From assembly GCA_965644295.1 (NCBI GenBank), contig CBFFRP010000579.1, forward strand, positions 1 through 11,946: a stretch of DNA of 11,946 bases, written 5' to 3'. Shown one piece after another: positions 1,811 through 11,946 of the stretch. The number at the start of each line of letters is the position of its first letter. The stretch's first letter is position 1. Under the pieces are notes generated by a model that had not been told where the DNA came from, did not search any database, and saw only the letters and a list, made by a program, of their open reading frames with translations. The stretch is from Paraphysomonas bandaiensis. Its lineage: Eukaryota > Protista > Chrysophyceae. The translations under genes and the position numbers were made by a program.

Positions 1811-2029
1811 GTGAATGCCTTACTATTAGCAATAGGCGTTTAAGAGTCAGAACTATTTTAACTAACTAGTGCTTTACTCTGATGCCCTACTACTTTACAC
1901 TACGAAAGCTGCTTGTGCGTCACCGAAAGCACCAAGGTGCAGTTACTTTAGCTCTATCACTCAAAGCAAACGCAGTAAGCAAGCAGAATGTTGATACACT
2001 TGACATCTGCTGACTTAAGGAATTTTGAG
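1811..2029 (-). repeat. Repeat copy A (inverted relative to B and C)
   Basis: The reverse complement of 1886-2016 begins AAGTCAGCAGATGTCAAGTGTATCA, identical to 2958-2982, and similarity continues to TAGTAGG. Copy A has an internal deletion relative to B and C. Confidence 0.9.
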
Positions 2030-2047
2030 CCTTTAATTAAGTGTGGT

Positions 2048-2221
2048 GCACAAGCAGATTTCGTAGCGTTATATAGATATATAGTAGGATATGAGAATTT
2101 GTACTAGTTAGTTACAGGTCGAAGTCTATCTAGCTTGACTAATTTTCATCTAGCTACATACCAGGTGCTGATTCTCGACGCCTATTATATGCTAATAATA
2201 AGACTTTCATGATATTATAAG
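2048..2221 (+). repeat. Repeat copy B (partial, direct with C)
   Basis: GCACAAGCAGATTTCGTAGCG...TAGTAGGATA...GAATT...TTAGTTA...ACGCCTATT...TAATAAGACTTTCA..ATATTATAAG is collinear with 3056-3239. Confidence 0.8.
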
Positions 2222-2633
2222 TACGTGTGAGAGCTGCCGATGAACATGTCGTCCTTCAGTGTTTTAAGAGGTGCAGTTAAACAGGGGGACGCCCTTTGTG
2301 ATAGAAGTCCGTGAAGCTTGAGGGAGGATCAGAGTTATGTAGATGGGAGGATAGTGTTCCGAGGGAGAGTGAGATGGTGCGAGTTAGAGGCGTAGAATCT
2401 GTAGAGTCTCAGGGTGCTACTGACTGCAGTGTATAAGTTGGACGTAAATAAAGCTGACGGAGTCGTCTACGTTGGAGGCTTGAAAGTGTAAAAGCGTAGG
2501 AGAAGGGGTCATACGTACAGCTGTGATTCTATACTGAGGCACCATCCGGTCCGAAGTGGAGGGACTTATGGGTAGTGTGGGTGGTAGTTGGAGGTTGATT
2601 GTGGAGTGAGCTATTGACTTGCTGGGTCAGGAT

Positions 2634-2813
2634 TAAGTCGAGGTAATACCAAAACCTGGTAAAGCGATTTCACCAGGTTTCATATCTAAGTATTGAGTTA
2701 TTATTTTACTGTAATTTGTATCTATAAGTCGAGGTAATACCGAAACCTGGTAAAACGATTTCACCAGGCTTCATATCTAAGTATTGAGTTATATTTTACT
2801 GTAATTTGTATCT
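2634..2813 (+). repeat. Tandem duplication, 2 x ~90 bp, each unit containing a hairpin
   Basis: TAAGTCGAGGTAATACC...GTAATTTGTATCT at 2634-2723 and 2725-2813; about 3 substitutions and one 1-nt indel. Confidence 0.95.
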
Positions 2814-2944
2814 GAGAGGTTAAAGATAAAGAAAAAGTCGCAAGTATAGTTGTTATTAACAGTATTTAATGGGCTAACCTCAAGGGCATCCGAGGGCTTG
2901 GGCTGTTTGCTGAAGTCAATCATCCAGGCTGTTTACCTTAAGAA

Positions 2945-3245
2945 CTCTAAAACCCTGAAGTCAGCAGATGTCAAGTGTATCATCATTCTGCTTGCTAACT
3001 GTGTTTGCTTTGAGCGATAGAGCTCGAGTGGTTGCACCTTGGTGCTTGCGGCGACGCAGAAGCAGCTTCTGTAGCGCTAAATAGTAGGATAATAGAATTA
3101 GGGTTAGGGTTAGGGTTAGGTTAATGCTGATTAGTTATGGGTAGAGGTCTAACTAGTAGGTCTAGCATTCAACTAACCACTATATCGGAATGAGGTTTTA
3201 ACGCCTATTGCTAAATAATAAGACTTTCAATATTATAAGACATGT
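2945..3245 (+). repeat. Repeat copy C (longest copy; carries a TTAGGG insertion)
   Basis: Aligns inverted to copy A and direct to copy B. Confidence 0.88.
3098..3123 (+). repeat. Interstitial telomeric sequence (TTAGGG)3 TTAGG TTA
   Basis: Read directly; same motif and same orientation as the terminal array. Confidence 0.95.
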
Positions 3246-6882: not shown

Positions 6883-7312
6883 AGTCTACAAAAGTCATAC
6901 CCATACTTTGCAACAGAGACCACCAACAGTACGACATGAACAGAGGCTTCAAAAAATCTTCTACCCATTAATTTCAAACTTCATATCTACACTCTGTAGA
7001 TGCATGTCCTTTATTGGGACACACTGCTGTACTTCAGATATACCGCTATATGGTACGCACGATATATCCAGTAATATGGAATACGTAGTGATACAGGTAG
7101 ATTCCTAGCGCGAGCTGCCCGTACTTCTGTAGTCTGCTGTAGGAATATAAAGCAGTATTTGCTATAAGAATACGATGTATTTATGACGACATCAACACTG
7201 CTCTTGTTTTCACAAGAAACGCAGAGAAGAGAGCCGCTGTGTGCTGATACTGTGAGATTAATGCACGTATGTTATCCTTATGAAGTGATATGGATACATA
7301 GATCAGAGATCT

Positions 7313-10300
7313 ATGAAGAAACCTTCACCAGAGAAAAGCGAAAGAGAGTGCAAAGAGCTGCAACGAACTCATGCAATCATAAGAGATCTTGAAGATAAAT
7401 TAGCAGCTGAAAAGCAGAAGAATCAAGAGCTGGAGAATGAAGTACTGCAACTCAAGTCGTGCTTATTGCAAATGTGGTCTCACGATCAACACAACAGCGA
7501 TGAGGGATTATTCACCGATCCCTCTGGTGGATCATCCGCTATGCTAACTGATGACTCACAGGAGAATGTTGGCTCCAGAGCTCCATTGAGACAGAAATCG
7601 AAGAGTGTGATTGACAGTGGAGTTGTCGAACATTTACGTATACACAAGGAAGAAATTACGATTAAGGTTTTCCTGTTGCAGTACGTCCTTCACTACATTG
7701 ACACCTTGACAGGAGAGGGTGGGTATGGGAAGCTTCGGAATAGTACACAAAGCAATGTTCGAAGAGAGTATAGTGGCAGTCAAAGTATTTATTTCAAGGG
7801 AAGTTGATATTAATAGAGAAATTGTAACGATGTCCAAAACTAAAGGTCAACCCCATGTGTTGGACCTGCTTGGTACGCTGTGAACTGCACAGCTGTTTTT
7901 ATGACTGACGAGTACTGTTGTTGTGCAGGTGTCGTTATTTCAGAAGAAGACCCTTACAAACCCCCCCAGGTTAACATTTGCATGTATTACGGATATATGC
8001 TGGCGTCGGAAATATGGTCATGCATATTTACGGTTATTTTTGCATTGGTTTTATAATGCTTATTCTATCTTCCAGGTTGCTTTGGTTATGAAGTTTATGG
8101 CAAATGGCTCTCTGCAAGATATTTGCTACCGGGACTCCCCTATGTATCACTCACATATTACCAATGAAACGAAAGTCAAGTTCGCTTATCAAGCTGCAAG
8201 AGGGGTTCTGAGTTTACATCAACTGAATATCATCCACCGTGATCTGGCGTGCAGGAATCTTCTTGTGGATGACAAGATGGATGTTTATGTAGCAGATTTT
8301 GGGTTTGCTCGACTGAAGCATATTGCGATGTCGAAGGAGTTTACTCAAACAAAGATAGGGCCCGTTCGATGGGAAGCCCCAGAATCTCTCGTAAACAAGG
8401 AGTTTTCTGAGAAGACGGATTCGTTTTCATTCGGAGTATGTTTATATGAACTCATTAGTGGCAAGCAGCCCTGGGACTCAATGCCTACTCCAGCTATGGT
8501 GATAGGTAACGTACTGAATGGCCATAGAATGCGCATTCCCATAAATTGCGATCCTGTACTTGCCGAACTCTGTGAGCTATGCTGGGCCCATGATCCTGAC
8601 GTGCGCCCGAATTTTGATGTCCTTGTACGTACACTTGGAGATCGATACAGAAAGGTATTACAAGATAACCGTGAAGTCAATAGAAAAATTGACACGGTCG
8701 AGTTCATGATCAGCGGCTGTAATGTAATAAAGTTTCCATTTGTTTTGAAAGATGGAAATAAGGCGAAGAAGCCAAAGCAACGCTTTCTGCACTTGACGTC
8801 GGACCTCAAGAGTTTGTTGTGGAGCAAGACCATAGAACGAGGACTTGAGATGAAAGATGTCACCGATATTCTAGTTGGCCAATCTACAAAAAATTTCAAG
8901 CTATTCGGGCCCGGTGGGTTGGGTCCATCATCGGCTGCCTGTTCCTTTTCCATTGTCACAGTGAGCCGGACACTTGATATAGTTTGCGAGAGTTCACATG
9001 CGAGGGACCAGTGGGTATGGGGTCTTAGATTTCTGCTTGCTCGTCAGAGAGAAGACAGTTTATATAGTAGGGTGATGATAAACCTTCGCCACAACTGGTC
9101 GATTTTACCTCGCGATATTACGTTGAGTTCATTTGGAAAGAAAGCGAAGGAAGATTTCGAGCTGACTCCGCAGATATTGAATGGTATTCGCCATGTGGCT
9201 TACAACCTCCAACGCGGTGAAATTATGATTAAATTCACTACCCGTAAAACTCACGCTCGTCATGTGTGTCTGTCGGAGGATTTAACGTGTATAACATGGA
9301 GTTCAGAAGAGGACGGGCCGGTCAGAAAAGGACGCAGCAAGAGCATTCTAGTTGATGAGATAGAGCGGATAGTACATGGTAATCAACCGAAACTACTAAG
9401 TGGTAGTGCTCGCATGGTTGCCGCAGCAGCTCAACTGTCAGAATCGCTGACGCTCATTAAGTCTCCTCCGACGATCAACCAACGACGAGAAAGAAAATGG
9501 GGCGTTGAGTCAACAGATGATCGACACATTGCGCACCAAACCCAAGCTACACATACGATGCCTTCCTCAGTAGGAATCTCAACATCCAGACGGGATAGGC
9601 GACTTTCAGTTTCCTCCAACAAAGATATAACTTATGATGATAAAGTCTCACACTCACAGAGGAATCCGACATCTTGGTCGCAACAGGTGCAGAGTTTTTT
9701 TCCTCCTCTTCCTTCTCTAAAGCGAGAGAGATCACTGGAAACGGGGCAGGGGTATGGGGGGGACGCGGGAGGTTCTATTGTGTCGGAGGACTCCTCTGGA
9801 GCCGAAAAAGAAAGAAATGATGATGAGGAGGATTACCAACTCTGTGTGTCATACTTAGGGACTGACGGGAGGACGCTTTTGGCAATTCGCTGCCCCAACA
9901 AGGACGCGTTGGACTTGTGGACCGAAGGCTTGACAGCTCTAATTGTTGTTCGAAAGATGTTCAGGCATTTCCAAATGCCCAATTATAACAGCCCTTCTGA
10001 CTTTGATGGCAGTGTGGTACGTGGTCGTCGCTGTGTTTCCCGTTATCTTATTCTCTATATCTTTGCATTTTGGCAACAGGTTGCGCATGTGCCTTCCAAT
10101 CGGAGCTGTATTGTAGATACCCTGCTGTCATCATCCGAGGATATAACTTCGAGAGAAACTACCAGAGTTACAGAGCAGTTATCTTGCGATGAGAAAACTC
10201 CTCACCAATTAGTAACATCTGTGGTGTCTGATGACGAACACAAACTGCTCCCGATGCTCACACCCGGAGAAATACAAATTCCTATACTTGATGAGAAAGA

Positions 10301-10760
10301 TGAGAAAGAGTACGGCTTTGGCAGGACTAATCACTCTTATACCTTGATGAGAGGGTCAGATCATGAGAGTAGTATTTTTGTGGATAGGATGTCGGTTGAT
10401 TCTCGCGATACTTCTACAACTGCAGCAGAACGCCGTGCTTCGCATGGTAGGTCCCATACGGAATCCGTCACAATGCACTATGTGGAGATGAAAGAGAATG
10501 GATCTCTGCTGGATCGATTGCCGGGATCGCTGAGAAATAGTGATAAGCGTCCAATTCGCGAGCTAAGTAGTGATGATGAAAATGATCATAATTCTACGAC
10601 GGATGACAGAAGTATCACATCGGCTAGTGAGTTGGATGGCTCTTTAGTCGGCATGTCCATTGTGAAAGATAAGTCAATAGAGAAAAAATGTTGCCATGCT
10701 TATGAATTTGCCTCGACGTCGTTATGCAGCGATACTCTCGTTACGAACGCTGAAAAATGA
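7313..10760 (+). CDS. Tyrosine-kinase-like protein kinase with N-terminal coiled coil and two PLC-type PH domains; join(7313..7666,7713..7872,7929..7969,8076..10016,10080..10760); possible extra first exon 7183..7266 spliced to 7307
   Basis: Splicing at 7667-7712, 7873-7928 and 7970-8075 rebuilds the full kinase domain: ERVGMGSFGIVHKA, VAVK, REI, HVLDLLG, ALVMKFMANGSL, HRDLACRN, DFG, GPVRWEAPE, DSFSFG, CWAHDPDVRPNF. PH1: GCNVIKF..KPKQRFLHL..LLWS..CSFSIV..RTLDIVC..DQWVWGLRFL. PH2: RGEIMIKF..HARHVCLSEDLTCITW...RTLLAIRC..LDLWTEGLTAL. The real start is upstream of the listed 7923 ORF. Confidence 0.9.
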
Positions 10761-10860
10761 TATTTAATTTGTTTGTGTTATGTGTGCTTGTATGTAGCAT
10801 GGCTGCGTATCATCTAATTGACGTAGGTTGTAAATTATAATTGCGATTATTACTATTCCA

Positions 10861-11074
10861 TTAGGGTTAGGGTTAGGGTTAGGATTGTTTGGGTTATACG
10901 CTGTCCCCCGATAGCTCCTTACCCATTTGAGGTTAGGGTTATACGCTGTCCCCCGATAGCTCCTTACCCAATTGAGGTGTGGATCTGTTTAACAATCAAA
11001 TTTAAGCCAATCAAAAAAAGGGTTAGGGTTAGGGTTAGGGCTCGCATGGTTGCCGCAGCAGCTCAACTATTCGA
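10861..11074 (+). repeat. Telomere-proximal mosaic of short TTAGGG tracts and unique spacers
   Basis: TTAGGG tracts at 10861-10883, 10931-10941 and 11019-11040. Spacers include a 45-bp-period duplication (10891-10933 / 10936-10978), an A7-ended segment (to 11019) and a kinase-derived 29-mer (11040-11068). Confidence 0.93.
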
Positions 11075-11925
11075 TTAGGGTTAGGGTTAGGGTTAGGGTT
11101 AGGGTTAGGGTTAGGGTTAGGGTTAGGGTTAGGGTTAGGGTTAGGGTTAGGGTTAGGGTTAGGGTTAGGGTTAGGGTTAGGGTTAGGGTTAGGGTTAGGG
11201 TTAGGGTTAGGGTTAGGGTTAGGGTTAGGGTTAGGGTTAGGGTTAGGGTTAGGGTTAGGGTTAGGGTTAGGGTTAGGGTTAGGGTTAGGGTTAGGGTTAG
11301 GGTTAGGGTTAGGGTTAGGGTTAGGGTTAGGGTTAGGGTTAGGGTTAGGGTTAGGGTTAGGGTTAGGGTTAGGGTTAGGGTTAGGGTTAGGGTTAGGGTT
11401 AGGGTTAGGGTTAGGGTTAGGGTTAGGGTTAGGGTTAGGGTTAGGGTTAGGGTTAGGGTTAGGGTTAGGGTTAGGGTTAGGGTTAGGGTTAGGGTTAGGG
11501 TTAGGGTTAGGGTTAGGGTTAGGGTTAGGGTTAGGGTTAGGGTTAGGGTTAGGGTTAGGGTTAGGGTTAGGGTTAGGGTTAGGGTTAGGGTTAGGGTTAG
11601 GGTTAGGGTTAGGGTTAGGGTTAGGGTTAGGGTTAGGGTTAGGGTTAGGGTTAGGGTTAGGGTTAGGGTTAGGGTTAGGGTTAGGGTTAGGGTTAGGGTT
11701 AGGGTTAGGGTTAGGGTTAGGGTTAGGGTTAGGGTTAGGGTTAGGGTTAGGGTTAGGGTTAGGGTTAGGGTTAGGGTTAGGGTTAGGGTTAGGGTTAGGG
11801 TTAGGGTTAGGGTTAGGGTTAGGGTTAGGGTTAGGGTTAGGGTTAGGGTTAGGGTTAGGGTTAGGGTTAGGGTTAGGGTTAGGGTTAGGGTTAGGGTTAG
11901 GGTTAGGGTTAGGGTTAGGGTTAGG
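11075..11925 (+). repeat. Telomere, perfect (TTAGGG)n, ~141 units + TTAGG (851 nt)
   Basis: Uninterrupted TTAGGG array with the G-rich strand running 5'->3' towards the end of the sequence, as expected for a right chromosome end. Confidence 0.99.
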
Positions 11926-11946
11926 AGCAATACGTAACTGAACGAA
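11926..11946 (-). other. Untrimmed Oxford Nanopore ligation adapter (technical artefact)
   Basis: AGCAATACGTAACTGAACGAA is the reverse complement of TTCGTTCAGTTACGTATTGCT, the 3' end of the ONT adapter top strand. Confidence 0.96.

Follow-up and report, generated by a model that had tools for sequence, protein, structure and literature searches.

The end of this chromosome raises the question of how a piece of a protein-coding gene came to lie among the telomere repeats beside the gene that it matches. The stretch analysed, referred to here as the window, is contig C579 in its complete length of 11,946 nt. The 29-mer GCTCGCATGGTTGCCGCAGCAGCTCAACT at positions 11040–11068 (+) is identical to positions 9408–9436 on the same strand (29/29, 0 mismatches), and no match to it arose in dinucleotide shuffles (0/200). 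The donor copy (9408–9436, +) lies in frame, with the codons ARMVAAAAQL, within the last long open reading frame (ORF) of the ORF list (7923–10760, +; 945 aa), which encodes a protein kinase with a PH domain (Pfam PK_Tyr_Ser-Thr, E=1e-46; PH_12, E=1e-14) and whose stop codon at 10758–10760 is followed by ~95 nt of 3′ flank before the first telomeric junction. Identity, orientation and the in-frame donor had been recorded in a first-pass annotation of this DNA and were confirmed. Across the 62.6-Mb assembly (669 contigs) the 29-mer occurs at these two places only, even with up to 3 mismatches tolerated; since it is unique apart from its donor, the dispersed repeat that the annotation had named as a finding against its own reading is ruled out. 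Two other matches were seen elsewhere in the window, namely an ORF resembling leucine carboxyl methyltransferases at 232–1050 (Pfam LCM, E=3e-31) and, directly upstream of the kinase gene at 7313–7807, a weak, below-threshold Mei4-like match.

To establish that the insert is real, the contigs of four public runs were compared with positions 7000–11086 of the window, the long TTAGGG array being left out. The public runs that contain this DNA are labelled marine. Run X1, from 2020, belongs to another study than the 2024 runs that were flagged as a possible source. One of its contigs, 102 nt long, aligns with 10991–11086, covers both junctions of the insert and shows 0 differences and 0 gaps at a depth of 152, compared with a depth of 98 for the 7.7-kb contig carrying the flanking single-copy gene; the insert is therefore present in X1 at or above single-copy depth, as counted on assembled contigs. 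Because an assembly built from 31-mers needs reads that hold the 29-mer together with both new flanking bases, the two junctions are supported by reads. A contig of run X6 that joins 11014 to 11065 was considered as an insert-less allele and rejected, as it matches the paralogous locus C319 (...CAATCAAAAA joined to CTATTCGA). X1 differs from the window at position 7108 at full depth, and may thus represent another isolate. A chimeric or mis-polished nanopore consensus could be suspected from a contig of merely 11.9 kb with an adapter remnant still at its end, but the exact repetition of 10991–11086 at depth 152 in a 2020 run of another study, from an assembly unable to bridge the 29-mer without reads holding both new flanks, makes such an artefact extremely unlikely. 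The annotation's concern that the insert might exist only in the consensus or in one chimeric read is thereby answered, whereas its claim that perfect identity implies a recent event fails: 29 nt have almost no dating power, and the insert was already there in the 2020 run.

The chromosome end consists of repair products deposited one after another, and the 29-mer opens the newest layer. At the junction of unique DNA and telomere lies an older leader tag, CTATTCCA (10853–10860, +), one change from the leader CTATTCGA described below. It is followed by a short proximal telomere tract (10861–10893, +) consisting of (TTAGGG)3 and then the decayed repeats TTAGGATTGTTTGGG, and by a 38-nt fragment of a sequence that we call element A (10894–10931, +; TTATACGCTGTCCCCC...), which likewise comes after the telomere tract at ≥12 other contig ends. 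GTTAGGG and a second piece of element A (~81 nt), truncated at ...ATCAAAAAAAG, occupy 10932–11019 (+). The next segment is a short telomere seed, GGG(TTAGGG)3, at 11020–11040 (+), the last G of which is common to the 29-mer (1-nt overlap). Beyond the captured 29-mer, the leader tag CTATTCGA (11067–11074, +), recognised from its genome matches and their consensus, overlaps the end of the 29-mer by CT, or by AACT in the AAA-extended form of the leader, and opens the terminal array (TTAGGG)141 + TTAGG at 11075–11925 (+). The last 21 nt (11926–11946, +) are the reverse complement of an adapter sequence, which we take to be that of nanopore ligation, and the same 21-mer stands at ~20 contig ends. 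This remnant indicates that the assembly is nanopore-based and that the array of 141 repeats stops at a real molecule end. At the ~20 ends, such remnants directly follow telomere arrays; they mark molecule ends, yet are a contaminant in the deposited assembly.

The left flank of the donor resembles the sequence that precedes the captured copy. A repeat search and the alignment of the junctions placed a telomere-like site immediately left of the donor (9399–9407, +), where AGTGGTAGT(G) in the gene and AGGGTTAGG(G) in the telomere agree at 7/10 bases, and this is the presumed annealing site for the 3′ end of the G strand. The annotation had noted that the donor flank is telomere-like; the likeness in fact reaches 9–10 nt leftward beyond the 29-mer (gene AGTGGTAGTG, telomere AGGGTTAGGG; 7/10), so that 38 nt in total agree at 92%. 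At the entry junction the seed and the 29-mer share one G, and at the exit junction 2–4 nt ((AA)CT) are common to the insert and the leader. The immediate distal neighbour of the insert is ATTCGA, which with the final CT of the insert makes up the leader CTATTCGA. The earlier description of the 29-mer as lying between two TTAGGG tracts is accordingly right on the proximal side, where GGG(TTAGGG)3 abuts it, but not on the distal side, where its neighbour is the ATTCGA of the leader. The locus therefore shows the features of a templated insertion: an insert identical to its donor, microhomology at both entry and exit, and recurrence, which was found at C289 and C591. The imperfection of the entry microhomology, with 3 mismatches in 10, is a point against this explanation.

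These junctions also bear on an origin independent of telomere shortening, in which a free 29-nt fragment was end-joined into the tract or the replication fork slipped or switched templates. Short fillers are common at end-joined repairs, and slippage has a counterpart at this very end in the tandem duplication at 10887–10976, which would count as slippage here. Such an origin is nevertheless very unlikely, given that the left flank of the donor resembles the telomeric primer at 7/10 positions, that the orientation of the donor is kept, that the insert ends precisely in the leader microhomology, and that a gene lying 1.6 kb off would not be expected to yield free 29-nt pieces. The duplication itself has a 45-nt unit, comprising the start of element A and the telomere-like bases before it, in two copies that are 96% identical; it may reflect slippage or else two additions made in succession.

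The leader that closes the exit junction is widespread in this genome. Followed by two TTAGGG repeats, CTATTCGA has 91 genome matches at ≤1 mismatch, 52 of them exact, and ~15 further sites were found with 1.5 repeats, giving a total of ~105. Most sites are internal and have the form of unique DNA, tag, 1.5–5 repeats and unrelated unique DNA; other copies either stand before element A/B or open terminal arrays, whose repeats number 49 to >250. Across 89 distinct junctions, the sequence preceding the tag is biased to A at positions −1 to −3 (76/64/61%) and to C at −4 to −6 (37/34/30%), the signal ends at −7, and ACCCAAA stands before unique flanks five times. This decaying upstream consensus suggests variable start points on one RNA, at which reverse transcription began 3′ of the telomere template, and an RNA template 5′-(CCCUAA)n-UCGAAUAG-UUUGGGU-3′ would fit the junction sequences. 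The number of repeats after the leader varies from 1.5 to ≥250, a spread so wide that it points to a copying enzyme that adds repeats processively, as telomerase does. Inspection by eye found no target-site duplications flanking the internal leader insertions, which argues against endonuclease-driven retrotransposition, and these insertions look like breaks repaired by telomerase. With ~105 tagged sites, leader-tagged interstitial telomere repeats may be more frequent here than in any other single genome in which they have been seen.

Leaders also occur within telomere arrays and near another repetitive element. At C591:622–2742 (minus strand), the leader sits inside a pure array, (TTAGGG)7 TTA CTATTCGA (TTAGGG)10 TTA TTCGA (TTAGGG)55, which indicates that a restart is possible without a non-telomeric end. 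At C144:211880–215500, two arrays stand in tandem, one of ~250 repeats and then one of ~250 with small defects, followed by an A8 run, the leader, 85 repeats and a second A8 run; the double array reflects either a chimeric nanopore read or telomere synthesis that truly restarted within an array. In the window itself, an element at 1886–3115 with 151-nt inverted arms (1886–2036 and 2938–3088; 83% complementary) adjoins an interstitial (TTAGGG)3 at 3098–3115. Its arm sequence (...CTACGAAAGCTGCTTGTGCGTCACCGC...) is likewise found beside leader-tagged telomere insertions at L026, L058, L098 and L115, and this inverted-arm transposon may target insertions of telomere repeats or attract them.

A genome-wide search for the pattern of a telomere tract, a 3–64-nt spacer and the leader returned eight junctions at five contig ends. 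At C289, the spacer is an 18-nt copy, in the same orientation, of sequence 62 nt upstream, and it lies between GGGTTAGGGTTAG and a leader-like TAATCGA(TTAGGG)3; its entry homology is near nil, which is a further point against the explanation that we favour. The telomere array of C591 contains TTAG-ATGCATCCAGAGAA-GGG, a 14-nt filler identical to the sequence that follows an internal leader-tagged telomere repeat at C144:108716. By our own arithmetic, the chance that such a match would fall next to one of the ~100–200 sites of this kind is ~1e-6, and the filler, being the flank of that repeat, suggests that a telomeric 3′ end paired with an interstitial repeat of a different contig and was extended along its flank. 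The remaining spacers were TTTTATA, an A8 run, none at all (the leader within the C591 array) and 30 nt at the C144 end, for which a donor was found nowhere in the assembly. Templated copying is thus not behind every spacer. The annotation had asked whether local donors are the rule at other ends; among the leader-adjacent spacers surveyed here, the donor was local at C289 and on another contig at C591, and the 30-nt C144 spacer had none.

Taken together, we favour, with confidence slightly better than even, a scenario in which the seed primed on the kinase gene, ~28 nt were copied, the strand was released and the end was re-capped via the leader. The chromosome end would have been rebuilt several times and at one time would have carried only the seed GGG(TTAGGG)3 on a truncated element A. 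The 3′ end of its G strand (...AGGGTTAGGG) would then have annealed to the complementary DNA strand at 9399–9408, 1.6 kb inward, either on the same molecule in a t-loop-like manner or on the sister chromatid, pairing with the site AGTGGTAGTG at 7/10 positions including the terminal G. A DNA polymerase would have copied ~28 nt, and the strand would have been released with a ...CAACT-3′ end. The AACT could subsequently have paired with the AGUU that lies 3′ of the template in an RNA of the form 5′-..CCCUAA-UCGAAUAG-UUUGGGU-3′, from which an RNA-templated telomere-adding enzyme would have resumed with ATTCGA and gone on to add 141 TTAGGG repeats. We infer this order of events from the layering and the junctions. 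In substance, the annotation had already proposed that a telomeric 3′ end primed 1.6 kb inward, copied ~28 nt and was re-capped, and the core of that proposal is reinforced by the parallels at C289 and C591; its re-capping by plain TTAGGG repeats has to be amended, as the leader came first.

The exit junction lends itself to another account. A sister or homologue broken at 9436 could have been healed by the leader and TTAGGG repeats. The intact copy, its telomere critically short, would then have invaded it at 9399–9408 and followed it to the end through break-induced replication, taking up the 29 nt, the leader and the telomere together. This genome clearly has many healed breaks, the exit ...AACT/ATTCGA looks exactly like ~100 other junctions of unique DNA and leader, and a single unusual event, the invasion, would suffice. 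However, this account requires two rare states in one cell, and the contigs of X1 and X2 run unbranched through 9436, although contigs drop rare variants. Moreover, the exits at C289 and C591 differ, being leader-like in the former and plain telomere in the latter, which release and re-capping explains more easily. We therefore regard healing of a truncated sister as unlikely and retain copying from the gene followed by release and re-capping.

The enzyme that adds the leader seems to copy more than its template. Inside telomere tracts there are short pieces from the opposite flank of the template (TTATACGCTGT.., TTATAGGCTGATCC..; TTATASGCTG.TCC, 10–17 nt), and at C289, C519 and C624 such pieces are directly followed by (CCC)AAACTATTCGA and more repeats. 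Judged by their sequence, these pieces and restarts look like read-through of the template boundary, after which the enzyme returned to the 3′ flank. The insert in the window could similarly be RNA-templated, if telomerase or another reverse transcriptase jumped to an antisense kinase transcript, copied ~28 nt and returned to the 3′ flank of its template. An enzyme that evidently copies non-template parts of its own RNA and restarts after jumps would be suited to this, the short microhomologies at both junctions are typical of template jumps by reverse transcriptases, and the kinase gene is transcribed in marine metatranscriptomes, as judged by word share only. The insert is mRNA-sense on the extended strand, so that the template must be the antisense strand, and an RNA template would have to be a hypothetical antisense RNA; in addition, the filler at C591 derives from sequence flanking an interstitial repeat, where a G-strand end would naturally anneal to DNA. 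An RNA template for the 28 nt is hence quite unlikely. The annotation had offered t-loop-like DNA and RNA as alternative templates; sequence alone cannot decide between them, and the priming of the C591 filler on an interstitial telomere repeat favours DNA over antisense RNA. Copying of a DNA template thus remains our preferred reading of the 28 nt.

The most likely source of the leader, as far as the sequences indicate, is the telomerase RNA, which would be predicted to carry UCGAAUAGUUUGGGU 3′ of its template (...CCCUAA-UCGAAUAGUUUGGGU); the alternative is a non-coding retroelement that mimics the template. Neither the assembly nor two scans of JGI metagenome contigs showed a locus in which the full leader flank is connected with the 5′ flank of the read-through copies. 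With the gene of the leader's RNA not found in the assembly or the JGI metagenomes, telomerase RNA is a source that we infer. The leader with one repeat and TTATA gave 18 matches in the genome, 0 of them with an A/B flank. Two candidates for the source gene were rejected. C333:23681 has the full 15-nt leader consensus, yet lacks A/B homology, and its read-through product occurs nowhere else, for which reasons it was taken as an ordinary insertion; C119 is the sole match to the full leader, repeats and A/B flank, but its flank is non-consensus. The literature searched contained no account of telomerase RNA from a diatom or an oomycete.

The A element cut off in the window belongs to a pair of homologous subtelomeric units, A and B, which are candidate retro-copies of an RNA bearing the telomere template. 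They are ~380–400 nt long, non-coding and homologous over ~380 nt (C119, C80, C591 and window positions 10894–11019). TTATASGCTG joins them to telomere tracts, and one 40-nt block within them (TAGAATACATAGAATACAGTGAATRCGGCTCTGTGAGCG) is nearly invariant. The units are antisense to the G strand, with their 3′ ends attached on the centromere side via short telomere tracts and their truncated 5′ ends capped by new repeats. Unit A contains no ORF of >50 aa, the ORFs neighbouring the units encode no reverse-transcriptase domain (three loci examined), and a search of three units against Rfam gave chance microRNA-like matches only and no telomerase RNA. Nothing similar to the U6 promoter, our comparison for a Pol III type-3 promoter, was seen upstream of the units or of the C333 locus. 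The two high-scoring U6 snRNA genes (C256:30483 and C430:228279) themselves have GAATCGAACC ~55 nt upstream and then a TTTATAT box at about −28. This upstream GAATCGAACC is similar to a tRNA T-arm in reverse complement, and the arrangement recalls the U-snRNA genes of trypanosomatids, which have divergent tRNA promoter elements upstream.

These observations can be drawn together in a wider model, which we put forward tentatively and hold with somewhat less than even confidence. The enzyme would habitually begin 8–15 nt 3′ of its template, so that every healed break and many chromosome ends (~105 sites) would be tagged; it would sometimes read through the 5′ boundary of the template, leaving 10–400-nt copies of its own RNA, which would be A/B; and critically short seeds would undergo microhomology-primed DNA copying before telomerase restarts, to which the 29-mer and the fillers at C289 and C591 would bear witness in a telomerase-positive wild organism. 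If this model is true, the genome preserves past telomere crises and their repair in readable form, and the leader reveals part of an undescribed telomerase RNA.

The units A and B invite comparison with endonuclease-deficient Penelope-like elements, of which Athena and Coprina are reportedly attached to telomeres and have RNAs that end in reverse-complement telomere repeats (Gladyshev and Arkhipova, 2007). Like these elements, the units are antisense to the G strand, have their 3′ end toward the centromere, are truncated at the 5′ end and are capped by repeats. Unlike them, the units measure 380–400 nt and contain no ORF, and no reverse-transcriptase domain was found nearby at the three loci, a difference also from telomere-specific retrotransposons of the HeT-A/TART and MoTeR kind, which encode a reverse transcriptase or are the partner of one. 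The repeat number is a second difference from Athena and Coprina, as it ranges here from 2 to ≥250, which is expected of telomerase.

Arrays added to non-telomeric ends are known as neotelomeres, which show 0–4 nt of microhomology and start in the repeat itself or, at times, after short, variable non-telomeric fillers (PMC11293586), and related work on de novo telomere addition concerns SiRTA in yeast (PMC7018233). The constant leader sets the present genome apart from neotelomeres, for which that study reports none (PMC11293586). Because the leader marks the start of each de novo addition, healed breaks, in-array restarts and fillers can be read directly from the sequence.

The capture of the 29-mer is closest to the templated insertions of the MM-BIR/Pol-theta type that arise in human cells at short telomeres and subtelomeric breaks and are ended by telomere addition (PMC13065848). 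Both share a deprotected end, priming by microhomology, a short copy in donor orientation, dissociation and telomere addition. The human events are fusion products in manipulated or cancer cells, whereas the insert described here is fixed and germline-like in a wild marine protist; it is, moreover, a single short insert with a cis donor 1.6 kb away, and its re-capping opens with an apparently RNA-derived leader. Templated insertions at deprotected ends are known mostly from cancer cells and from engineered yeast and human systems. Here, a capture has become fixed in a natural chromosome end beside the intact gene, and two more are present in the same genome. In our best reading, the copying step is itself known, and what is new is a templated, MMBIR-like insertion at a telomere that was re-capped through a leader tag.

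The wider leader-tag system is a more surprising result than the capture of the 29-mer, and its nearest parallel is the TERC-ITS of vertebrates, in which repeats at repaired double-strand breaks are flanked by retrotranscribed fragments of telomerase RNA (PMC2246262, PMC8537989). These were described at 41 loci in 22 species, with fragments of 25–98 nt that derive mostly from distant TERC domains and lie in the opposite orientation; a rare type in Xenopus has the fragment immediately beside the template (PMC2246262, PMC8537989). The two systems agree in that repeats inserted at breaks are contiguous with a non-telomeric piece attributed to telomerase RNA, here as its most likely source. They differ in that the present genome alone has ~105 loci, with a constant 8–15-nt tag in template orientation that is also found at terminal arrays. 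If the tag does come from telomerase RNA, it would disclose 15 nt on the 3′ side of the template and ≥17 nt on the 5′ side, in a lineage without a described telomerase RNA in the literature searched, and that RNA would be retrotranscribed far more often than vertebrate reports indicate.
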